A stretch of DNA of 56,092 nucleotides, the filler included, from Sluysia triapertura (Eukaryota): the NCBI GenBank assembly GCA_046118255.1. It is 4 parts of 4 records of this genome, joined end to end, with 100 filler letters (N's around TTAATTAATTAA, not from the genome) between each part and the next. Parts side by side here need not be neighbours in the genome. Positions count along the whole stretch, not along the records: positions 1 to 16,413 come from JBJNIA010204262.1; 3 more parts are not named here. One strand, given 5' to 3'. The position numbers and the translations under genes were made by a program. Below are positions 1-16,413 of the stretch, one piece after another (positions within the stretch are counted from its first letter, which is position 1; every line of letters begins with the position of its first letter). The notes below the pieces were generated by a model. That model was not told the origin of the DNA, searched no databases, and saw nothing but the letters and a program-made list of their open reading frames with translations.

Positions 1-2285
1 TACCAGTTTTTCCCTCATTTTATGATTTTACATATGTTCATTCATCTCCAGATCCTCAGTTGGGCAATCCCAACAATTCAAATTAATAGCTGACTGTAAC
101 ATTCTTACCGAAACAATTTTACCAATTTATTATTAAGCGTTATTTTAAGTGCGTTGTGAATGATTGACTTATTACAAATTTTTTGTGCCGATTGGTCTCA
201 AGTCAAAACGTTTGTGTTTCAATCGTTGTCTTTGCTAATTTCTGATTTCCCAATTTTTTTGTATTATCAATGATTAATTGCATTAATGAATTTTTCCAAA
301 ATGGCAAAACTAATTGTACGCATTTAATTTTCACTAAAAATGACCTTAAATGTTTATTATTTTGAGTTATTATTACGGCCTCTAGGCACTTAAAATTATT
401 ATTGTTGTATTTATTATTATTCTATTATTATTTTATTTTCGAGGCTGCTCGTATAACTTTAAATATGGGAGACAAATTAAGAATAAGAAATAATGTCAAA
501 ACTTCTGGTATTTTGTCAGATGAAACATGGGAAAGAGTAAAATTTATCACAACGTAGTCGCTATAGAAACATATGTGATACATAAAAAATAAAAATATTT
601 CGCCATTTTGTAGAATTGATCAAACCAGCCTTGATGCAATGAATCTATATTAATTTATGAATTAAATAAGTTCCAATATCATTTAATATTTCTAAAACAA
701 AATATTTCGTTTAATATCTAGATTTGTATATCAAGATAATAATGAATTGCAAAAGATGAAAGTTATATGACAATAGAAAAGATAGATGAAATAGAAACTC
801 CTACGACTTTAGTGTAAAATAGAAAATAGGATAGACTAATATTTGTATCGAAAAATTGATAATACATTTCAGTAAAGAAATTAAAGAAACAAACTAATAG
901 AGTATTTATTGTCGGAACAAGAAATGCTTCAAGCTGAGAAGGAAACTTATTTAAAAAATTAAACACAAGCTTTAATAATGAATTTACCATAATTTAGCGT
1001 TAATGTCCTTAGAAAAATTTTATCAGGCCGCGGTTACTAGCTAAATTAGAAATAGCTATTACGAATCAAAATTTGGTTAGAAGGGTTTTTGATAAATTAA
1101 TGGATTAAGTTCCACATACTTACAAATGTGCAAGTTACATATAACTACAAAGGTACAAATACAACTATGACAGGAATCGGAGGATGCTAATAAATTGCCT
1201 GAAATTTATGCAAAAATACAAACTTATCGTGATCCAATAATACAAGTAATAAATTAAAACATAAACTAATGCATTGCACAAATCCGAAATGACAACCTGT
1301 AGATACAATTACCACACAAAAATCAATTAAAAAATCTAGAAATAATAGGGTTAACTGAATTAAAACGGAAATTAAAATTTTTAGCAACAAAAAATATTCC
1401 ATTCAGATATCTATAAATGTGGTATTTCAATTTATATCACCTCCTTTTGGAATTGAATCAATAGTGGCTTAATGTTAGTTCTTTTTACACTTCTACATTA
1501 AATAAAAACCTTAACTTCTGTGCCACAGATATAAGTAAATTTTACTCTCATGTATTGCAATGACAACTTTTTTGTGATACAAAATTTTTCTTAGTTTTAA
1601 ATTATATTCATACAGAGTTCGATGCACAAATATATATCAAAATATTTCACAAAAAATAAGGTTGTCTTTTTGAGTGCTAATTATACGAATGAATTTTGGG
1701 TATTTACATTTTCAACTTTTTTACCGTAATATTTTATTAAAAATGAAAGTACAATTCTTGCATTACTCTTCGATTTTTACTATAATTTCTTTTAATATTT
1801 TTTCAAGAATTTATTGCTTATAATAGCGATAACTGTTTCTAGTGAAATTTTTCAAAAGGTTGCATTTGACGAGTAGTAAAATTTGTAACTGCCAAACTTG
1901 CTGCAATATTTCTCAAAGAAATATAATGCTTCTTTGATGACGTCGTTGTGATGTTGCGTATTTTTTCTTGCTAATTCTTTATATTCAGTAGTTGATACTG
2001 ATTTCCAAAGAATGTTTCACCAAATGTGGTATCACATTCTTATATGAAAGTGTTTATTCGAAAATTCTTTTTAAAACTTGACCCGAAAGGATTAATTTGA
2101 GGTAGAATAATTCGTAATCAATTTTGATTCAAAATGAAGTCATTTCATATATCAAATGTTGGATTCGAATTTAATTCTTGTAAAAATTAAGCTCTATTAT
2201 TAATTAAATAAAAAGAAAACATTTTTAAACTTGCAAAAAATCACAATAAGTAACCATAAATATATATTTATTATACAATAAACAA

Positions 2286-3809
2286 TTAATTAAATTTTTG
2301 TAATTTTGCTTTTCCATTAGAAACAGAATCACCAAAGCGTTTTCCACCTCGACCCCCACGATCATTTCCACGTCCAGCTCCTCTACCTCCACGTCCGCCA
2401 CGCGAAGCACCTCTTCCACCAGCATCACGACCTCGACCACCTTCAACTTCAATTAATTCGGGAATGTCACCTTCTAGTAGACACATATTATCAAATTTTC
2501 CGTCTTGCCATTGACTTTGAAAGGCATCATCAGCTTCTTTTGGTAGATCAAATACAAAACCCATTTCATCCTTCTCCATCTTAATATTTGTAATTTGTTC
2601 AACTAAGTCTTCTGCTATTAAACGTTTGAGGGCCTTAAACAAATAACCGTTACTGAAAATAGGACGGTTAGTACGGAAATGATAAGCAGTGAAGTTCGGT
2701 TTCCCGGTCAAACGTGATACATTATCACCTTCAAATCCAGGGCGACTAGGAACAATCTTCTTGTCATTAAAATTTTGTTGAGTTGGGCGGGATTGATTTA
2801 ACGTAACCAATCTAGAAACCAATTCTATATCTGAATACTTCTGCAGTAATAACTTGGCGGTTTCATTATTTTTCTCGAAATTTTTTACCTGATCGACACG
2901 TTCCATAAGCATATTATCAATTTCATATTTCTTAGCTTCATTAGAAATTCTAAAAATATTAAATATAAAAAAATTAATCTTACTTCTCTGTTTTATCTTT
3001 TTTAGATTCACTTTTTTCATTATCTTTATTTTTGTTACTTTCTTCAGAACTGCTGCCTTCTTTTGAATCATTGCTCTTTTCTTCTTCCTTTTCTGAATTA
3101 GATTCACTAGCCTCACTAATAGTACTACTCTGATTTTCGACTATTTGAAATCCTTTCTCAAAATTATCCATAAATTTTTTGCAGTTTTTTATTTCCGAAC
3201 AAGTAACAATCATTTGTAAAGAATTTTCACTGTCGACAGAATCATTACTTTGGTTGGCATCCTTAGACACCTTCTTTGAAATTTGTAAAAGACATTCTTC
3301 ACATTCCTCAACTGGAACAAAACTATAAATTTGTTTAATTGATTTAGTTTTGATGCAACCGTCACTTAATAGTTCTTGAAAACGCTCTACGGATGCAACT
3401 ATGATATCAACAGGACCATCCAAAGCTTTCTTGTTCTTTTTCTTGCTTTTGTCTTCGTGACATGCAGCAATTATTAACTCTTTTGATAATAAACTTTTTA
3501 TATTTTCAACAACTACGTTACACGACAAAGCTGAATCGGTTAAGATGATAATGCGAGGAGTTCGTTTGTCCTTTAACTTTTTTATTGCTTCAGCCTTTTT
3601 AACAGCAGAAGCTTCTAAAACAATCATGCTAATACCGTCTAAAATCATTTATATCATATTTCAATAGACTTACCTTGTATCAATACATTTTGACCTCCTT
3701 GTATATAATTTAAAGCAGCTACTTCAATTTCTGTGAACGATTCGACCTTTTTGGCTTTTAATTTCTGGATTAAATTATCCGAGAAATTCATGCTGTTTAT
3801 GTCAACCAT
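2286..3809 (-). CDS. DDX21/DDX50-like nucleolar RNA helicase homolog with GUCT domain and RGG tail; helicase core degenerate; 484 aa, 3 exons
   Basis: Exons 3809-3674, 3638-2984 and 2949-2286 with GT-AG introns of 35 and 34 nt join into one open frame of 1455 nt. The C-terminus (SRLTGKPNFTAYHF...LFKALKR...GFVFDLP...QWQDGK...IPEL) matches the GUCT domain of DDX21/50 and is followed by GGRG repeats. The N-terminus follows the order of DEAD-box RecA1 motifs (PRIIILT, VDIIVASVERF) but they are degenerate. Confidence 0.85.
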
Positions 3810-4323
3810 ATAAGAATAAAATGAAAATATAAATATTTAAACAAAGTAAAAAATACTTTATATAAATGTATATTATTTTTCCATTTAATTTAGATAAATC
3901 CAATTAGATAAATACAAAAACCATTTTTAATTTTAACTGTGCATCAAATTTGAAGTATTATTATCCAATATCGCTAAAAAAATTTTTTATATATTTTCAA
4001 AAATATTTTAAAAAATTAAAAGTAACAAAATATACTAATGATGAAAATAGTATTAAAATAAGATATTAAAACTTATATTAATTTAAATTTTATTTAAAAA
4101 AATAAATCATTAAAAAATATTTCATTAGAAAATTAAATAAATTTTGATTAAAAAAACATTAATCTAAGGTCTGATTTCAAAAGTAATTGGAAAAAAATCA
4201 AATTGCCATGTTTTTAATAATTTTTTTGAATTAGTAAATTTCGTATTATCGCTTGAAATTTTTTAATTTCGCCGTATTAAATTAATAAAATAATTAATTC
4301 TTTTAGTTTAGTACAAATTTTAA

Positions 4324-4397
4324 TTTGAATGGTAAGGTGTATGTAGGTTTTCAAAGTTGTAAAGTTATGTGACATCATCATTATTCAATGTTATGAT
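4324..4397 (+). mobile_element. Short fragment of the same LINE ORF1 family
   Basis: TTTGAAT.GTAAGGTGTATGTAGGTTTTCAAA...CAATGTTAT is shared with 21641-21715. Confidence 0.65.
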
Positions 4398-5559
4398 TTC
4401 TTGTAATTGATGAATGTAACACCAAATTAGATGACATTATAAAATTTAAATTATAAAGCACTGAAGATTCTGTAAACTTGTATAAAATAGCATTCTATAA
4501 CGTGTTAGTGTGTTTTTCGAATTCTAACCTCACTATTTATACTTTTTCGGTATTTTGATCTTTAAAAATTAATTATTTATTCAGATTTAATAAATATTAT
4601 TTAATTCTTTATTCACTTCAGATTGTATTTAAAATAAATATTAATATTTAATTAGTGATAAAGACCAGATTATAATTTTCTAATTTCATTTTAACTGTAT
4701 TACTTTTACATTATAGTTTGAATACTGCAATCATATTTTAAGTATTAAATTAATTTAAATTTCAACAATTACAATCTAAAAATTAAAATATAATTTATAA
4801 TTTCTAAAACATAATTTATCGAATTTATCTTCACCAATACAAGATTTCATTAGATGCATAAACTTTATCCTTCAGATGTGTTATCAGTCCCAATTGTTTA
4901 TTTTTTAAGATGATTTACAATTGTTGGATTCATATTATCAGTCAAACATTTTTCTTGCGAATGAGAACTGTTGGGATTGTCAAGCTGTGAATCAGAAGAT
5001 GAGTGGGGGATATGTGGAACCAGAGAGTGAAGGAAGAATTGATACGAAGTGATAGATTGAGTATTATAAATAATGTTGAAGTAAGAATTATGAAGATGAA
5101 AACATCTATATCAATGTTAACAACTGAGGAATACTTGGGATTTTCAAAGACCTATATAAGGTATTGAGGCTTTATGGATTTGTGTTGAGGTGTATATTTT
5201 CTATTTATGTTTTGTGTTTTATGTGGTTTGTATAAATGATTTTGATTGGTATATATAAATGATTTTATTAGAATAATTATTTTTATTATAATAAATTTTA
5301 ATTTTATTAATCAAAATAAATTTTAATGTTTAAAAATCAATATAAATATTAATATTTAAAAATGTAAATTAAGTATTATTAATATTTTAGAATATAAATT
5401 TTAATATTTTTAAAATATGAATATTTTAATATTTGAAAATTTTAAATTATTTATTTCAATAAAATTTTTAACAAAAATTTGTTTAAACAAATCAATTAAA
5501 TCAAAAAGTAAGATGGAGTCTTAAAAATAGTATAAATTTAGAAAGAAGATCAGAACAAA

Positions 5560-5870
5560 ATTTTCATAAAAGTTTTTAAGGAAAGTTATTTTGAAGAAAT
5601 TTCAATTTTTTGACGGAACATTTAAAGCTATTCCATGAACAAGTAATTTTTTATCGCCTACGTTTTAAAGATAATTAAATTAAATCTCACGTAAATTTCA
5701 GAATATTTTATACTACACCTTAAAAAGGCTAGGGAGATCTAAAGCTAAAATTAAATACCACATCAAGGAATCTAACGTGAATTTTTAAAATATACATATG
5801 CATTGTAAGTTTACTTTTATTTCGGCTTTTGTAATAGAAGCATTAAGGAGTTGCTTTTATTTTCAATTCA
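5560..5870 (+). mobile_element. Possible MULE/Mutator transposase remnant
   Basis: TTTGACGGAACATTTAAAGCTATTCCA encodes FDGTFKAIP (MULE DGTFK motif) at 5609-5635, with a degenerate C-F-x-F segment near 5850. No open frame remains. Confidence 0.4.
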
Positions 5871-8800
5871 TAAAATATTTGTTAAAGACTTAAAAAGCTA
5901 TTTTAAAATTGTAACATCACTTCATTTTTTCAAAATTAGATCGTACAAGGCTAGTGTGATTTCAAAAATTCTATATACTAGACCATAAAAAGGTTAGTGA
6001 ACTATAAATTAAATATTTAGAAACGAAAGTGAGAATAAATTAGTAAAACAAAATTAACTGTACGTGACCTAGTATTTTCAACTTAAGCAAATTATCTTTT
6101 TTTTCGTAGTTCTTTTGAAAAAATCGTGATAGCACGTCTTTAGCATTGATATAAATCGTGTATTCTAGGCGAACCGACTCTCAGATATTTTGTAGGTGCA
6201 AGAATTTAAGTATTTTTAGGATAAAACAATAAATTAGCATTTTGAAAGCCTGAGATCATCTGAAACATTAATATTTGAAATATCTATAAGCATTTAAGAC
6301 CTTTGAGTAACCTTATAAAGCAGCTGAAATCTTTAAAATATTGGAGAAATAAAATCATTGTTGCTAATATTAATGTAATATTAAAAAAGTAATCAGAGTG
6401 GTGAAATGAAAGCATCTGAAACTTCCTGAGTAGTAAACAATTTTAGAACCTTAATAAAACCTTTAAACATAAAAATAAGCTTAAGTCTAATGTTGGGATT
6501 GGTGAAGGATAAGGATAGATATGAGTCAGAACTCAGGACAACAGAATAAAATAAACATCATTGAAGAATTCAGATAAGATATTATGATGAATAGTAATAA
6601 TAAAATAAGCTTATAAGATACTTGAATTAAAATAATAAATAAGAAATGTGAAGAAATAACCCTTTTCAAGGTTTTATTTGTTAAAATATTAAAGTACATT
6701 TGTTAATTAAATTAGATTAATTGATAAAAATTATAATTTACTTAATTAAGAAAAGTACGTTTTTGTGAATAAAGTTTGATTACGGAATACTATGCCAAAG
6801 TGAAAAATGTGTATGTTTATTTTAAAGATCTTTTGATGAAGGTATGGTTTGACAAAGTCAAATTTTAATTAATTTTTAATTATGGAATGTTGAATTTTTT
6901 ATACTTAGATTGATGAAAATATAATGAATTGAATGTGGGATAATTGCTATGTATTTGGAAGTGAGTTCGAAAAGCCTTAATAACCTTAAACATTTTGCAT
7001 AAGAAAATTGGATGCGAAAAATCAAATATAAATTGAATTCTAAAAACTAAAATTAAATTAAATAATACTGGTGATTGTTACTTTAATATGAGAAGTAATT
7101 TAAGTAAAAATAAATCGAGTAGAGTAAAGGAAAATAATATATGATAAAATCAATTTATTGTATTCTGAATTTGGTAGAGTTTGACAGACCGTACCTTGTA
7201 ACTGTCAAAGTTATTATTGCCTGTCTAATTCTCAAAGAGTGTTGTAATGGCTTGTGTGAGATAATGTTTGATTGTAAACCTTGAGAAAGATTGAATGATG
7301 AAAAGTATAAAATGAGTACTTGGAAATTTTGCACTCATTAAGAATATCAACCACGTTGCCAACACGAGATCCAATGATGATTTCATGATATGGTAAAATT
7401 TTTGATTTATACTATTTTTTAATATAATTTTGTTTGTAATACCACATTAAAATTATAAATAAATATAAATTATTTATTGTTTTCATTTTGCTGCTTTAAA
7501 GTTATTTTAGAAAGGATTAATTACTTATCAATAAAAAAGGAATCCTCATTTTTTTATTAAGTATTTTTAAAGATTTTCCACATCCATATAATTAAAATTA
7601 TTTTTTTGGGAATTCCTTGATTGTTTAAATTGTTTCCGGGAAGATATTGGAATTTAATAAATTGTTAATTCATTAGTATTAAGATATATTTAAATCAGAA
7701 TTATCTTTGGGATATTTCCTGATCAATTTATTTCTAAGGATATATTAGAATTTCCTTTAGTGTGTAAAGTTTTATTTTCTTTTGGTAAATTACTAATATT
7801 AGTGATTTCATTAGTGATTTGGTATAATAATATATTTTTAACACCGAATTTCATTTTTTGTGATTTCTTAGCAATTGTTGTGCTCGAATATATTTTCTTG
7901 TTTTGATTTGATAAATGTTGTATATACATAAAACTATAGGAAAAAATAAGTTTGATTTGGAATTAATATAGAAGGATTAATAAAATAAGAATTTTAGATT
8001 TACCGATAAAATAGAGAAATAACACGACCTTATGTAAAGAACTTTTAGAAGGAAGCAAATAGGTTAAATGAAAAAATTCATCTTTCTCAAAGGATTGATT
8101 ATAGTTTTGGTTCATTAACTTCATGATGAATTTTTTTAGTCAAGATCTGTTGATTAGTACTAATTTTGCCTATTGAACTTTAGTGATATTTTTATGTTCA
8201 ATACAAAATGTTCAGTTTGTAAACTGTAGTCAGGTAAAAATTTTAAATGTTCCAATATCTTATTCGCTGATGCACGTGTTTCTTTAGATGTAATAGCACA
8301 CTTTATGCTATTATACTTGAAAAATTTACAGTATACGACTTACTAATGGCGTACCTGTAAAAATTAAGTGAAAGTAATTATCAAAATTAATCGTACAAAA
8401 GATGCTTCGCCTTAACTTAACAATAATTGGCAAACGTAGTTCAAGTAAATAGAATTCTGCGGTCTTAATATTTTTTATTGCACAAAAATTATAATAAAAT
8501 AAAATTAACACAAATTCACAAAAATACGACAAAAATGAATATTAATAATATAAAAATATTAAAAATGATAAAATTATAATAGCGATAATAAATGAAATAT
8601 AATAAAGGTCTAGCCCAGAAGACTCTACCCTACAATATCTATTTTATAATTGACCTTACGGGCCAACTAAAGATTCGAAATTTTATATTTTAAATGGATT
8701 TTGTGATTGGCCTTAATGACCAACCGTGAAAAAGGATATTTTACGTGTATTTTATGACTATACAAAAAGTTGATAACTTTTATAATATAAACTTACGATT

Positions 8801-11800
8801 AACCAATAAACACGAAAAATAGATAATTGTTTCTTCTTCGAAATTATGTGTTCTATGGAAAATCGTTCCCTTTAATCGTAGACGCGGGACACGATTTAAT
8901 CACCTTGATTTATAAATTGAAGATTTGTTGGATTCCTCGAGAAGGACGATCTAATATTGGATGATTGATGTTTGATGAAATAAAATGGCGAAGTGACTTC
9001 TTTGTTTTCCAAATATGATGAATTGCAATGAGTATTGTTGATTGTTTTATTTGTGTCTTTGTTTTCTTTGACTGTCTTTATATAATGATAAAGACATTTT
9101 TAAGTTTTTATTTCAATGAAACAAACTTCTTTCTAGAAGTTTCTTTTTATGTATTTTTTAATTTATAATAATACTTTTAATTTTGTTATAATTAAAATAA
9201 TAATTTTTTAAATAATATGAATTTTAGTAATTATTTATAATATTTTGTAATTTTAAAAAACCATAAAAATATAAAATGTAAAGTATAAAATTATGTACAC
9301 CTTTACATAAAAATACTATAATTTTCTTTATTACTTTATTAAAAATTAATTTAAAAATGTTACAACCTAATTTTAAAATAATTTTAAAAAAACTATCCAA
9401 AAATTTACAATTATTTTTTTTACAAAAGTTTATAATATTTATTATAATATTTAATATTTTCTACATTACAACATTTATATTTTTACAAAAGTTTTACAAT
9501 AATTTAACCATAATGAATTTACATATTTACAATATTCTGAAAATATCCTCAGAATATATAAAAAATTCTAATTCTTTGAATCGGCTATTTCGGTTTTTCG
9601 GATGCTTGTTATTTAGTTTCCTTCTCCAAATAACTGTAACTGTCCGTACTTATATTGATATTCCAATTTACGAAATTTCGCGTTAAATATAATGATACAA
9701 CCCATTATCTTTCATCAAGACTTTTTCTCGAGTTTTAAAAGTTACCGATTACCGGTCTCACATCTTCCAAATATAACAACCTTGGACCTTTTCATTTTAA
9801 AGTAAGATTATTAAATCTAGAGTTTTAAACATTAAAGAATAAATATTGAAGAATATAGATGGCACTTAGGGCACCTTAGAACATTATTAATTTTCATTAG
9901 AAAATTTAAGGGATTCTTATTTTTATTAATAAATAAATTCAAATTATGATAGCATTTAAAGCCTTGAATAACACAATTACAAATTTAAAATCTTTAATAA
10001 AATAAAATTACATGTGTGCGACTTAAAATTGACAGAATCTATGTACTTGTTAATTTTAAGATAAAAATTTTGGGTTGCTAAATCATGAAAATAAAAACGA
10101 AAGCGTTTATTAAAAGCTTTCATAAAAATTTTATTATACAATTCATCAAATCCTTCGCATGACCTTTATCACATTAAATCGAATGAGAAACTGTCGATTT
10201 GGCACAATCTGCACCTTTATCTAAATTTAATAAATGAATTAAACAGATATTTCTATTTGAATGAATTCAGAATATCATCGAACTTCTTTTATGAGAGATT
10301 TAAAAACACAAGCCTTAATCCAAAACTGCCACATTTTATTGTTTTCCATGAACAATTTAAATTTCAATTCACTAAATATGCGTATTTTAAAATAACTATC
10401 TTCTTAATTAGTAACATCAACGTTATTTTTAATTTTATTCAAAATTACGTAGATTCCATTGTCAAATGATCTATCAATTGAATTAATACCAAAGGATTCT
10501 AAATCTATTACTAAATATTTTCGTAATGCTAGATGTTGAATTACTAACTTTTAATCTCCATGATTCAAATTTGACTTACAATAACTATCTTCTGTATTTT
10601 TATAAATAACGTTAGGCATAAAGAATTTGATCAACACCATTCTTTATATCATTTATTGATTACGAGGATCCCGGACTATTACGACCTTCGTGTATGTCAA
10701 TGTCTTTTTCCAATGTTCACAATGCATATTTAAAATATTATATAGACTTTGGTTTTATTTTGATTTAATTCTTAATGTTCAAACAAAAACAAGATTTATA
10801 ACGAATCATAAAATAATAATACAAATTATTAATAATAATAATTTTTGCAAAATTTTATTTATAAAGGTTTTAGAAAAATTTAGTTTTTAATTTAATAAAA
10901 TGTTTAATAATAACATCAATTTAGTAATAATTGGTGCAAAATGCAAAAGGAAAAATAATATGGTGGAAAATTGAATGTGAATGTTATATTGTTATTATAT
11001 AGTTTTCTATTGTATTTATAAAGATGCAAGAGGGTTTTGTGGACAATATAATGGATGTAAATAATAACTGCACCGCGGATAGAAATTGAATATTATTTGA
11101 TCGTCATTCGTGTAACAAAATATTTAAATATACATTATCACTTATTTGATATTCTGTTAGCATTTCCTGCGTCAGTTGCATTTTTCGTATTTTCTTAAAA
11201 TTATCTATATACTTTCTGGATACCCTGTAAATTCATTGTTTATATCTAACATTTTAATAATACAATTATTTGCTTTGCCTTAATAAAAACAATATTAATT
11301 TATAACAAAATAGAAATATAGTTTTATTTTTCAATTAGGGTTCCAAGGAAATTATTGGATACACTTTGGGATGTTTATCGTCTTTATTCTATTGTAGTGC
11401 CAGAATACCTCAAATAGTTATGAACGTTAGTTGATCTAATAATAATTATTTTTTTTATTATTTTTATTATTATTATTATGGTGGTGGCGATAGTAGTGGT
11501 GGTAACTTTTGCCTCCCAGATGTTTGATTGATATTATTCGTCCACAGTGCGAACAGTTTCCTTAAATGAGTTTGTTATCTTAAGTATAAAATTTTAAACT
11601 ATAAATTTAAATTATATGCTCTGGGACTTGTAATATTTATGCTGTATTACGGTTTATTTCAAAAATAGCACATTTTAATGAAAGATATGCTATTTTGGGT
11701 AAAATAAGGTGAATGAGCTACAAACTCGTGTTTAAAATATTATTGAAATTTGTATTTATTTACTAATAGTCAAAGTTAATAGTGGTTAGTTAATCAGAAT

Positions 11801-14800
11801 ACATGAGTCTCGCATCACTACAATATCAGCTCTCACTTAATCCAAAAATCAACACTACATATACAATTTATACAAGAATGTGATGAAGATTACATTGTTT
11901 ATAATTACATGACCACCCGAATGAATTTTCATTTTCTTAAGTAGCGTTCAGCATGATCACACAAGCCTATTTATACAAGAAAAAGTGGATATCATTCGAC
12001 TGTCCGAAGATATATCCGAATGATACCACCTTTATCTTGTAGTGATGCTGATGCTAACTATTACTAAATAATAGTAATCATCAGCATCACAAAACCTATG
12101 TATAAATGTAAAATATAACTATGATTTCACTTTAAGAATTTTTTTGGTTGTACGATTTTTAATTTAAGAATTTCATTAAGAACGTTACTTAATCTATTAG
12201 AAATAACATCATATTTACTAATAATATTATTGCTACTGTTTATTCTATAAAATTCAATGACAAAATTTCTTAAAATGTCATTTTGACACATAAAATAAGG
12301 ACCTCTTAACTTAAGGTCAGTAATTAATTTTAACTTTGAAATTGTTATTTTGACTATTCAAATAAAAACATTTATATTGAAATTTTATTAAAAATAAAAC
12401 CGAACTTGGTAGTTAATAATCTTTAAACACGAAGGTGATCACATTCTGCAAGATCAAATTGTCTTGAACTGAAACAAAGTCTTGTAAAATAAAATTGTCA
12501 CACATAATTTTTAATGTATGTTTAACATGTAGGTAATGTAACAAAGTTATTATAAATTCAATTAAAATTATAAAATTCAAATAATCTTGAATTCATTCTA
12601 AAATACTAAGCTACAAATTTATTGGTAGTACTTCTACATTTTAACATAAGACTTGATAGAACATTTTTACTATTTAAAATTCAATGTCTAAAATCAATTT
12701 TGTTACAATCTTAATTATAGAAATAAGCCATCGACATACATTATTCTTCATCTTACAGAAATCAGTCTCATTTATAAGTGAACTATCACTAAACAATCCG
12801 TTAAATGCATGAAACCAACATTTATCAAATAATTTAAGTACTAATACCTAGATTACATAAGATATTACACAAACACTTCATTAAACCAAATACGCATTTG
12901 GCAAATTATTTTGATAATTACTACATAAAACATAATTCTAATAATAGGAACTTCTTCAGACTTAAGCATCATTTAATCAACATATTCTCCAGTATATTTG
13001 TATTCTGTTAAATGGTAGTGAATAGTATAATTATACAGATATTCTAATTTGAACAAAACTTGATTTTCAACACTTATTTCCTCATTGTCTATTATAGAAT
13101 CATAAAATGGAACATCATATGAACTAGGTAGTTGAATATTTTTACGAGAATTAATTTATATTTATTTTACTTAAATTATAAGTTAAAATTTAAGTCATTG
13201 AATGGATATTTTGAAAGTCCAAAGATATCTTCCTTACTTATGTATTGCCTAATTTTTCATGGATAATTTTTATCACTATCATTATTAAAGTTACCATCAT
13301 CTTTTTTAATTTTAATTAATTTAAAATTTGGAAACAATATCAGGATATGCTGAACACATGTCTACTTTGATTGTAAATGTTTGACAACATCTTAACTATA
13401 ATTGGTCATATTCTTCGCTTTATATAATTTAGCAAAATTCGAGCACCCATTCTATATTACTGTTTAAAATTTTACTCTCCTTAATTATAATCTGTGTTTA
13501 TTAGTTTTTAGTAGTTGTTATAACTTAGTTGAACTCTTTCTAATTGTCAATAACTATATTTCGTATTTAATTTTTTAAATTTAATTTAATTTTTCAATTT
13601 AATCTGATGGCCGAAATTTTTTCCTGTTTTTATTATTTTAACTAACACTTTTCCAGATGAAAAAATTTGTATATCCATCTTCTATCTGATCATACCTCAT
13701 CTGCCAATCACTTTTGAAATCATTAACAAAACCAAAACACATACATATTACATATAAATTACCCATTCTTGATTTGATTGCGTGATTAATTTTGCCTCCA
13801 GTTTATATAATTATATAATTAATTATATAATTAAGGCCATTTTGAATTTTGTTAAATATTATTATTTATAATTATTATTATTAATTATTATTATTATTGC
13901 TGTTATTTTTATATTTATAAATAAATACACATAAATTAAACACTTATAAATTCTGGGCTTTGTAACAAATCTCTAAAAATTTTCTAGTTTCGGCATAATT
14001 TTTTTTGACTTCAAAATTTGTCTTTAAAATAACTAAGTCTTTTCAAAGTGATCTGAGCATTCTGTATTCCATGATGTTTCTGTTTCTTTTACATTCACTT
14101 TTACGTCTTCTGTACTTGATTTTCTTTAACTAGGAAAATCATCCATCTTGGTTTTTAAATGAAATTAATTTTTAGTATTAGTATTATTAATTATGATTAT
14201 GATTATTATTTTTCATTATGTTATTACATAAACTGCACTTAATTTCTTGTTATAAATTGAATTTTTCTATTTGTTTCTTCAAGAATTTCGTAATACATCT
14301 GTTCTTTATTTTGTTCGATTCTGACGAATGTATTTTCTAAATCGATTTGATATATTTTCAAATTAGAATTAGATGATGTTGTGAATTATGTTTGCGCTTA
14401 TTTTTGAATGATTTGGTTTTTCACCATTGGATTTAGTTCGTTCAATAAATTGATTGTCATCAATAATGTCCGTATTAAATTTCGATACATTTTGATTCGA
14501 TAAAGGTGGATTCAATAAACTTTTTTTATTACCGGAATGAAGACCATGATGGTGATTCTGTTTCGGTTTTTTCAGTACTAACTGTTTTCTTAAGTATCCT
14601 CTCCCTATTGTTGCTGCTTCTTATGACTATGATGACTCTTCATTTTGTGATTTTGCAATACTTTCACAACCCAATCTTTGGCTTTCTGAACAACAAGACT
14701 CCATTTACAATTGTTCTGTTTTATTACAGTATATAGTTATCGTCATGCACACATACAACCAGGTTTATTAATTAGATCCATAATTACTGATTACTTGTTA

Positions 14801-16413
14801 ATCACGTCTTTGGTTGTGAAAAGGAAAGTTAGGACAGAAAGTTCAGAAGAGCTTGGGTTTCTCTTACAAAAATTTCATTATAATATTATTTTGTTATTAA
14901 AGGATTACTTTAAGGTTATAAAAGGTTTTATATGTTGAAGTGTTTAAATGTTTAACTTGTGCACATGGTTTACAGTTTCGGTTGTTGCGTTATTGTAATG
15001 CGTGATAAATAAAAAGATTTAAGTAAGAAGGTTGAACCACCACAAGTTATGTAGCTTATTTCCAACTATAAGCTAATTAATTGCAGTATATAATATCGTT
15101 TCGGTGATTCATTTTCGATATGTATTAGTTTTCGAATAGAGTATTCAGTTTTTAGCAGATTTTTTTGGGTTTTTCTAACGACTGCGTTGGATCCGTAATA
15201 TTTTCTGAATACTAATTAAGTATGATTGATTCTTGTATTATGCAATTATGCGATTTAAAAAAAGGTATACAAATATCGGACAAGAAAAACCATTTATTTT
15301 TATTAAAACCATTTTCTGCACATAAAATTTTTATTGAAAATGTTCTAGAAAAAGTGCTTAAAACATACAACGTCATTACAATAAGCGTAACGTATAAATG
15401 AAATTCGTTCACAGTCATTAAAATTAAAATTGACATAGTATTCCTGAAAAGTTATTTTTTTTCGATGAATTCAGATGAGTATCCAGATTTTTGCTATGCA
15501 TATTATAACATAGGAGGTATCGTACACTCCAGAAAGTAGCGCTGGCGAATGTATCTGTATAATATGGCCAATAACAAGGAAAAGAGAAGAAGTTTTGAAG
15601 AGATAAGTACACTTTTTACATAAAATAAGCGCTTTATAGATAAATAGAAATAAAAACAAAATTAAACTGTTGAAAACACAAAAAATAATAAGAAAAATAG
15701 CACAAATAAGAAAAAATAAATACTAGGGGAAATATCGAAAAATTTTTTATGCTGAATTCAAAATTGAAAATATTCCTATCCATTCTAAAGATAATTTTTT
15801 GAACTTTAGAGAACTGTAACTCATATAAATTAAGTTTTGTCTGCCAAGTTTGGAACACCTCCCTTGTTAATAATTTCAAAATAAACATCTTAAAATATCT
15901 TTCAATCAAAAATAAATAAATTTAAATAAAAATGGAACTTAAAAAAGATAGATATAAATATACCACATTTAATTATGAAATCAAAAAGGTAATGAATCAA
16001 CCCTAACGTCGCAAAAACGAAAAAACCATGTATTTTATTAAAATGGAAATGAAGAAATAAATACTAACAAGATAAACTAACAAATTACTGGAAAGTATAT
16101 GAATGTGTGTTTAATTTAAAGTATTTTATATTTGGACTTTAAAGTTGATATTTATTAGGTTGAACAAAATTATTTATTCTAGACTATAAAATTATAAGTT
16201 TATTAAGGTTGTACTTATCCAGGATTTTATGCAATTTATTATTTTAATTACATGAAAAATTTTTAATATAATTTAATTTTTAACGTTATAAACATTTATT
16301 TTTTGTAATCTAACTTAAAAATTACTTTAACACTATATTTACCAAACCAGTCATTTTGACTGGTTTGATTAAAAATTACTTAAATTTCTATATAAATTTG
16401 TATATTTATTTTA

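Follow-up and report, generated by a model that had tools for sequence, protein, structure and literature searches.

An apparently catalytically dead DDX21-type gene lacking the second RecA domain in Sluysia triapertura

Gene structure and host

We describe a DDX21-like gene of Sluysia triapertura, found in a stretch of DNA of 56,092 nucleotides, filler included (the window), in which four parts of the assembly GCA_046118255.1 are joined end to end. The gene lies in the first part, a 16.4-kb piece (positions 1 to 16,413) from JBJNIA010204262.1. There the minus strand holds, at 2286-3809, a 3-exon frame of 1455 nt, that is 484 codons and a stop, interrupted by two GT..AG micro-introns. An earlier note on this DNA had described an intact, clean 484-aa frame with canonical splice sites, and our model reproduces it exactly. 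The protein joins the degenerate remains of the first RecA domain (RecA1) of a DEAD-box helicase to a C-terminal module shared with the helicases DDX21 and DDX50, and an acidic tract stands where the second RecA domain (RecA2) would be. The features of the locus are these:

3674..3809, minus strand: exon 1, 136 nt (45 codons and 1 nt), with the start codon and the degenerate Q-motif region (..KVESFTEIEVAAL..)
3639..3673, minus strand: intron 1, 35 nt, GTAAGT..TTTTAG, phase 1, interrupting the codon directly 5′ of the former Walker A motif
2984..3638, minus strand: exon 2, whole, 655 nt
3133..3638, minus strand: exon 2, part one, a degenerate domain of RecA1 type in which motifs I, Ia, GG, Ib, II and III have all disappeared
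2984..3132, minus strand: exon 2, part two, an acidic low-complexity tract of Ser, Glu, Lys, Asp and Asn, about 50 aa, in place of RecA2
2950..2983, minus strand: intron 2, 34 nt, GTAAGA..TTTTAG, phase 2
2286..2949, minus strand: exon 3, with the stop TAA at 2288-2286
2790..2915, minus strand: three predicted helices, of which the last two match alpha3-alpha4 in the dimerisation domain of DDX21 but carry a changed interface motif
2478..2717, minus strand: GUCT domain (Pfam GUCT), with a fold like that of the RNA recognition motif (RRM)
2343..2441, minus strand: RGG/RG-rich tail, predicted disordered (exon-3 residues 170-202; predicted local distance difference test, pLDDT, <50)
2286..2342, minus strand: conserved C-terminal end KR....K..KF-N/D (K203, R204, K215, K218, F219) and the TAA stop
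2267..2272, minus strand: candidate AATAAA polyadenylation signal, 14 nt past the stop; weak evidence, the surrounding DNA being AT-rich

The frame is more than a chance opening, since the GC content of the exons is 32-38% against 17-24% in the flanks, and since its two open frames run to 284 and 222 codons, whereas no other in the 16.4-kb piece exceeds 134. In-frame stops stand directly upstream of the start codon, and the start M-V/T-D-I-N/S is common to the window gene and an mRNA-like ortholog described below (L005). The piece contains no N. Searches and folds were made exon by exon by reference, rather than on the joined 484-aa protein. In the remainder of the piece (1-2285 and 3810-16413) no tRNA, Rfam family or convincing second coding frame was found. 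This DNA around the lone gene amounts to about 15 kb of 20-27% GC, and its repeats are short AT-rich tandem repeats only.

A ciliate or other alternative genetic code was considered on account of the AT-richness and the tiny introns, and was rejected because the 484 codons hold no in-frame TAA or TAG; a flatworm placement fits instead. Micro-introns of 34-36 nt fit flatworms. On the mitochondrial contig C243991, which is 14.9 kb long and AT-rich, the conserved Asn and Ser positions of COX1 read correctly only when AAA is taken as Asn and AGR as Ser, which is the mitochondrial code of flatworms. Judging by this mitochondrial code and by the nearest relatives of the gene's intact paralog, which are flatworms and molluscs, the host is a rhabditophoran flatworm.

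Lost helicase motor and retained C-terminal module

Pfam DEAD scores 23.8 bits in exon 2 (E 4.2e-5), short of the cut-off of 26 bits, and Helicase_C has no match at E up to 1 in any of the three exons. Aligned with canonical DDX21 (canonical readings in brackets), the protein reads SFTEIE at the position of the Q motif (LFPIQ), QDGISMIV at Walker A (AKTGTGKT), TDSALS at motif Ia (PTRELV), ED at the GG pair, ASVER at motif Ib (GAPGR), FVPVEE at motif II (DEVD) and TCSE at motif III (SAT). The motifs have been substituted in place, not deleted; among the RNA-binding motifs tested, only the Arg of Ib remains. In 32 canonical DDX21 proteins, 45 RecA1 columns reach a conservation of 95% or more; the window protein keeps 6 of them. 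Past the last RecA1 strand the chain runs directly into the tract of about 50 Ser, Glu, Lys, Asp and Asn residues. Every motif reading given in the earlier note (FTEIE, QDGISM, TDSALSC, SVER, SFVPVEE and TCSE) recurs in this alignment, the replacement of the second RecA domain by a Ser/Glu/Lys tract that it had reported agrees with the lack of a Helicase_C match, and the Pfam outcome that it had foreseen, with GUCT strong, DEAD weak and Helicase_C absent, was obtained as 55.8 bits, 23.8 bits and no match.

AlphaFold2 models the RecA1-like core with a pLDDT of 82.4 and a regular strand-helix alternation, from an alignment consisting mostly of canonical sequences, which favours a helicase fold. 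The best PDB match to this model is human DDX21 (6l5m, E 8.9e-5, TMq 0.50). By descent the protein belongs to the DEAD-box helicases of superfamily 2, having a RecA1 fold and detectable DEAD homology; as an active DEAD-box enzyme it does not qualify, with motifs Q, I, Ia, GG, Ib, II and III and RecA2 all gone. Because the P-loop Lys, DEAD, SAT, RecA2 and the arginine fingers are all missing, we infer that it would carry out neither the ATPase nor the unwinding chemistry of this family.

The C-terminal module tells of a closer kinship. The exon-3 match to Pfam GUCT reaches 55.8 bits against a cut-off of 27 (57.2 bits when the genome was scanned); the domain is modelled by AlphaFold2 with a pLDDT of about 96. 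In the PDB the exon-3 model has its best matches in two GUCT domains, that of DDX50 (2e29) and that of DDX21 (2m3d), each at TMt 0.72; phmmer finds 2e29 at E 1.4e-4. RG-rich tails are present in canonical DDX21 and in all members of what we call the dead family, that is the window gene and the three orthologs introduced below, and K203, R204, K215, K218 and F219 hardly vary, if at all, among dead and canonical proteins. The GUCT domain, the Arg/Gly-rich tail and the position of flatworm DDX21 as closest relatives in the tree place the protein in the DDX21/DDX50 (Gu) subfamily. The retention of GUCT and an RGG tail, claimed previously, is borne out by the Pfam score and by the RGG/RG run at exon-3 residues 170-202.

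The exon-3 model has helices at residues 12-20, 24-37 and 40-53 (pLDDT 85-94). With hhalign the last two match alpha3-alpha4 of the canonical dimerisation domain (E 4.7e-4, probability 32%), over 30 of the roughly 60 columns of that domain. This helical segment is the best-conserved part of the dead family outside GUCT, and its columns A31, K32, L33, D40, S45 and L47 are invariant within the family. The Pfam dimerisation-domain family, PF26142, matched no C-terminal segment in our Pfam scans, whether canonical or dead. In human DDX21 the dimerisation domain comprises residues 568-620, and LAAALA in alpha4 (611-616) forms the hydrophobic interface; mutating LAAALA to Arg makes the protein monomeric, and the intact dimer is needed for unwinding of double-stranded RNA and remodelling of G-quadruplexes (PMC7721647). 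Where canonical proteins have A-L-(A/S)-x-A-L-A, the window protein has V-S-R-L-V-T and its orthologs have VSRLI, VSRLL and ISKLL. The basic residue in the middle of this motif (Arg or Lys) is conserved in all four dead copies, and human DDX21 has Ala there. The dimerisation region that the earlier note took to be retained is retained by position, as the hhalign match indicates, but its LAAALA interface is not. Since the Ala-rich interface has been replaced by a conserved Val/Ile-Ser-Arg/Lys-Leu motif, pairing with an active DDX21 appears doubtful; a changed partner or self-pairing would be likelier.

Duplication, orthologs and constraint

GUCT loci number only two in the genome assembly (619 Mb, 263,945 contigs): the window gene and a gene on contig C81812. 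Exon 2 has no match elsewhere in the assembly. The C81812 gene is a complete DDX21, with AKTGTGKT, PTRELV, GAPGR, DEVD, SAT and HRSGRTGRAG all present and with Pfam scores of 135.7 bits for DEAD, 109.7 for Helicase_C and 87.7 for GUCT; it is the intact paralog that the earlier note had supposed. Its nearest named relatives are DDX21 proteins of flatworms and molluscs, with 45-49% identity; the best match overall, at 58%, is a protein without a name. Identity between the two paralogs is 25% over RecA1 (BLASTP E 1e-6) and 37% over GUCT and tail (E 3e-21).

A 36-nt phase-1 intron of the C81812 gene (L004) interrupts the codon immediately 5′ of motif I, and intron 1 has equal position and phase in the dead gene, the intact paralog and one ortholog (L007). 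This shared intron, identical in phase and codon, marks the dead gene as a DNA-level duplicate of the single DDX21/DDX50-type gene, not a retrocopy. Intron 2 has no counterpart in the intact paralog, where the matching region is a single exon. A phase-2 intron found in L006 (196-239) and L007 (787-833) lies about 13 codons downstream of intron 2 of the window gene, a sign that an intron may have been gained, or have slid, within the dead family.

Relatives of the dead gene are few. A word search with the 284-codon open frame 2289-3140, in which the exon-3 part alone scored, gave two metagenomic proteins of 49% and 43% identity. When 1.84 billion representatives were searched exhaustively with the RecA1-like core, one true relative emerged (P0124, E 3.2e-12); a second protein found by this search (P0125, seven stretches) was rejected as a spurious repeat protein. 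A scan of metagenome contigs with a GUCT profile of the dead family yielded nothing beyond the JGI contig found before, and further searches for dead-family members likewise found no more than the three contigs L005, L006 and L007. As only these three other contigs turned up among billions of public proteins, the dead family is, by database content, lineage-restricted and essentially undescribed.

The three contigs, which bring the species known to have the gene to at least four, have the order of the window gene: degenerate RecA1, acidic Ser-rich tract, helices, GUCT, RGG and K..KFD. Walker A, DEAD, SAT and RecA2 have been lost in every copy, with such readings as TDAQITAA and DLVKYKL at Walker A, NYDKID/NFGSID at DEAD and TSSS/TVSD at SAT. 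The RecA1-like part of L007 scores 35.3 bits with Pfam DEAD, above the cut-off. The acidic Ser-rich tracts stand at the same place in all three, with sequences unrelated to that of the window. L005 has no intron at either conserved intron position and has AATAAA 11 nt past its stop, followed by a run of A; on these marks it is a spliced, polyadenylated mRNA-like contig. L007 shows a steep gradient of composition (80-1521), from an AT-rich 5′ intron region to exons whose third codon positions have a GC content of 0.59 (RecA1-like) and 0.90 (GUCT).

Among the dead-family copies the proportion of non-synonymous differences by the Nei-Gojobori method (pN) is 0.14-0.31 for GUCT, 0.27-0.54 for the helices and 0.34-0.45 for the RecA1-like part, and the synonymous proportion (pS) is saturated at 0.53-1.2, with values of 0.67-1.2 for GUCT and the RecA1-like part; for GUCT pN/pS is 0.27-0.37. 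On these values non-synonymous change clearly appears to be held back everywhere, most strongly in GUCT. Trees were made by quick methods (FastTree and IQ-TREE LG+G4) from one C-terminal block of 232 columns. In them the four dead copies form one clade (support 100, stem 0.86), which sits within or beside flatworm DDX21 (enclosing clade with a support of 98 in the Shimodaira-Hasegawa approximate likelihood-ratio test; inner placement with support 82-93).

The gene does not behave as a pseudogene: its introns are kept with canonical ends, it has no stops, its orthologs are conserved and pN is well below pS. The earlier note had argued the same from the open frame and splice sites, and three orthologs of the same architecture, which form one clade with the window gene, and a pN of 0.14-0.45 against saturated pS now add to that argument. 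We consider it very likely that this is a real, selected, catalytically dead gene.

Proposed role, related systems and other DNA in the assembly

The history of the gene, as these results show it, is as follows. The single DDX21/DDX50-type nucleolar helicase gene was duplicated, and one copy kept the RecA1 fold while losing the motifs for ATP binding, ATP hydrolysis and RNA clamping, the whole of RecA2 and the Lys-rich N-terminal extension. This copy kept the last dimerisation helices, GUCT, the RGG tail and the conserved C-terminal end. As to its role, we propose that through GUCT and the RGG tail the protein would bind structured or G-rich RNA independently of ATP, that the acidic tract and the inert RecA1 shell would serve in protein contacts or condensate behaviour, and that the altered but conserved interface helix may mediate self-association or the binding of some protein that is not canonical DDX21. 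Such a module combined with a disordered tract that is acidic and rich in Ser is a composition typical of nucleolar proteins. In human DDX21 residues 574-783 are necessary and sufficient for G-quadruplex binding, and the C-terminus has an ATP-independent 'foldase' or remodelling activity (PMC5499804, PMC7721647). By analogy with the human protein, we put the probability of this whole statement, namely that the protein binds RNA or acts as a chaperone without ATP in nucleolar or ribonucleoprotein assemblies, at roughly 0.65.

Several observations weigh against it. The RecA1-like model resembles DDX21 only moderately (TMq 0.50), and the FRGQR/PRGQR repeats that bind G-quadruplexes in the human protein are absent as such, the tail here being a generic RGG one. 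Synonymous divergence (dS) is saturated, so that the ratios above are no true omega. In L005 a run of nine A (356-364), lying between the halves of the RecA1-like part, contains a frame break of 1 nt; both frames are open around the break, which is probably a homopolymer error, and L005 was treated as two pieces with the break left unmended. Finally, the window copy is on the longest terminal branch of the family (0.79 against 0.21-0.34) and is its least similar member (GUCT identity 56-59%, against 67-79% among the other members), and the intact paralog of the same genome is likewise on a long branch (0.74). Since the branch of the paralog is equally long, the lineage as a whole would seem to evolve fast.

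The earlier note had suggested either an ATP-independent scaffold or a dominant regulator of an active paralog. The catalytically dead gene common to both stands, and its regulator branch has been weakened by the altered interface; between the two, we infer the scaffold. Once a homodimer has been duplicated, a diverging interface more commonly keeps the two paralogs apart, which counts against a regulator. Such a protein would heterodimerise with canonical DDX21 and poison or tune the helicase dimer, as the positional homology of the helices to alpha3-alpha4, the intact paralog in the same genome and the dependence of unwinding by human DDX21 on an intact dimer (PMC7721647) would allow. The interface motif, however, has been lost in all four dead copies, which carry a basic residue at the position of the human Ala, and Arg at the interface made human DDX21 monomeric (PMC7721647). 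With a helix match that is moreover limited to 30 of about 60 columns at an hhalign probability of 32%, we regard a regulator of this kind as unlikely.

The family might also be functional elsewhere and the copy of this species be a young pseudogene that has acquired no stop so far, a reading that would suit its terminal branch of 0.79 and its low identity to the other members. We find this improbable, given that 484 codons are open where stops come about every 12 codons, that both introns are GT..AG and the start codon is conserved, that GUCT pN/pS is 0.27-0.37, and that the branch of the intact paralog is equally long. An assembly or annotation artefact, in which RecA2 and the motifs are missing from a collapsed or chimeric contig, is scarcely credible even in an assembly so highly fragmented (263,945 contigs) and containing foreign vertebrate-type mitochondrial DNA: the 16.4 kb have no N, a single unbroken exon holds the RecA1-like domain, the acidic tract and the splice donor, the motifs have been replaced where they stood rather than deleted, and the same direct junctions of RecA1-like domain, acidic tract, helices and GUCT recur in independent assemblies of three other organisms, including a contiguous mRNA.

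The proposed ATP-independent RNA-binding protein can be compared with several known systems. It is homologous along its full length to DDX21/DDX50 and the intact paralog, with which it shares the RecA1 fold, the last dimerisation helices, GUCT, the RG-rich tail, the KR..K..KF(D/N) end and the phase-1 intron before motif I, and it branches with flatworm DDX21. Unlike DDX21/DDX50 it has no Q, I, Ia, Ib, II or III motifs, RecA2 or Lys-rich N-terminal extension, and it has an acidic Ser-rich tract, a changed interface helix and an extra linker of about 20-25 aa before GUCT. Residues 574-783 of human DDX21, with the dimerisation domain, GUCT and the basic tail, are the module retained in the window protein; the human tail has FRGQR/PRGQR where the window tail has RGG/RG, and the interface helix differs. 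A targeted literature search found no DDX21-derived form that keeps RecA1 only with GUCT and RGG.

Hera-type helicases have a helical dimerisation motif followed by an RRM-like domain, the same arrangement as in the window protein, and a Hera fragment (3i32) and Hera RRM structures are among the exon-3 fold matches, 3i32 weakly (E 0.01). They are, however, active helicases with both RecA domains. Nucleolin offers an analogy only: its acidic Ser-rich tracts, RRM-type domains and Gly/Arg-rich tail are a typical nucleolar RNA-binding architecture, but it is not homologous to the window protein and the order and number of domains differ. Utp25/Def of the small subunit processome, a factor of ribosome biogenesis, is likewise DEAD-box-derived and is reported to be structural rather than enzymatic, with helicase motifs that are dispensable (PMC9539457). 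Utp25 keeps both RecA-like domains, superimposable on eIF4A (PMC9539457), whereas the window protein has RecA1 only, with GUCT and RGG. The two come from different helicase subfamilies.

More tentatively, the family could be a flatworm-restricted separation-of-function form of DDX21, in which an ATP-independent module for RNA or G-quadruplex remodelling (helical domain, GUCT and RGG) has been freed from the motor, joined to an inert RecA1 shell and an acidic disordered tract, and insulated from the active paralog by a re-coded interface helix, with dimers or partners of its own. The activity that DDX21 has without ATP, known to date from work in vitro on truncated human protein, would in that case be a biological function by itself. 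The family would in any event represent a different kind of pseudohelicase, with one RecA domain wholly discarded and yet conserved across deep divergences, as against Utp25, the one case considered here, which has both. It can be seen as a natural experiment on which parts of DDX21 are selectable without the ATPase, namely GUCT, the last dimerisation helices, the RGG tail and, to a lesser degree, the RecA1 shell, and it offers a natural variant of the interface helix that controls dimerisation in experiments with human DDX21. Annotation by similarity alone would give a gene of this kind the wrong label of 'ATP-dependent RNA helicase DDX21/50'.

The assembly contains other mitochondrial sequences besides the flatworm contig. 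Three contigs (C219470, C200653 and C192378; L009-L011) carry at least three different COX1 genes of vertebrate type, with 47% GC and TGA as Trp, that are fish- or amphibian-like. Vertebrate-type COX1 beside a flatworm mitochondrial contig suggests that the sample includes host or prey DNA, or several individuals, and that the flatworm is a parasite of an aquatic vertebrate. Two further contigs (C37458 and C90747; L013 and L014) carry AT-rich COX1 of flatworm type with in-frame TAA/TAG and local frame damage; these may be mitochondrial variants, or else mitochondrial DNA copied into the nucleus. Two DDX21-like proteins (P0005 and P0068) labelled 'UNVERIFIED_CONTAM' come from an assembly of the sturgeon Acipenser sinensis. 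P0005 is the second-best match to the intact flatworm paralog and P0068 stands lower in the list; both may come from a parasite in the sturgeon sample.

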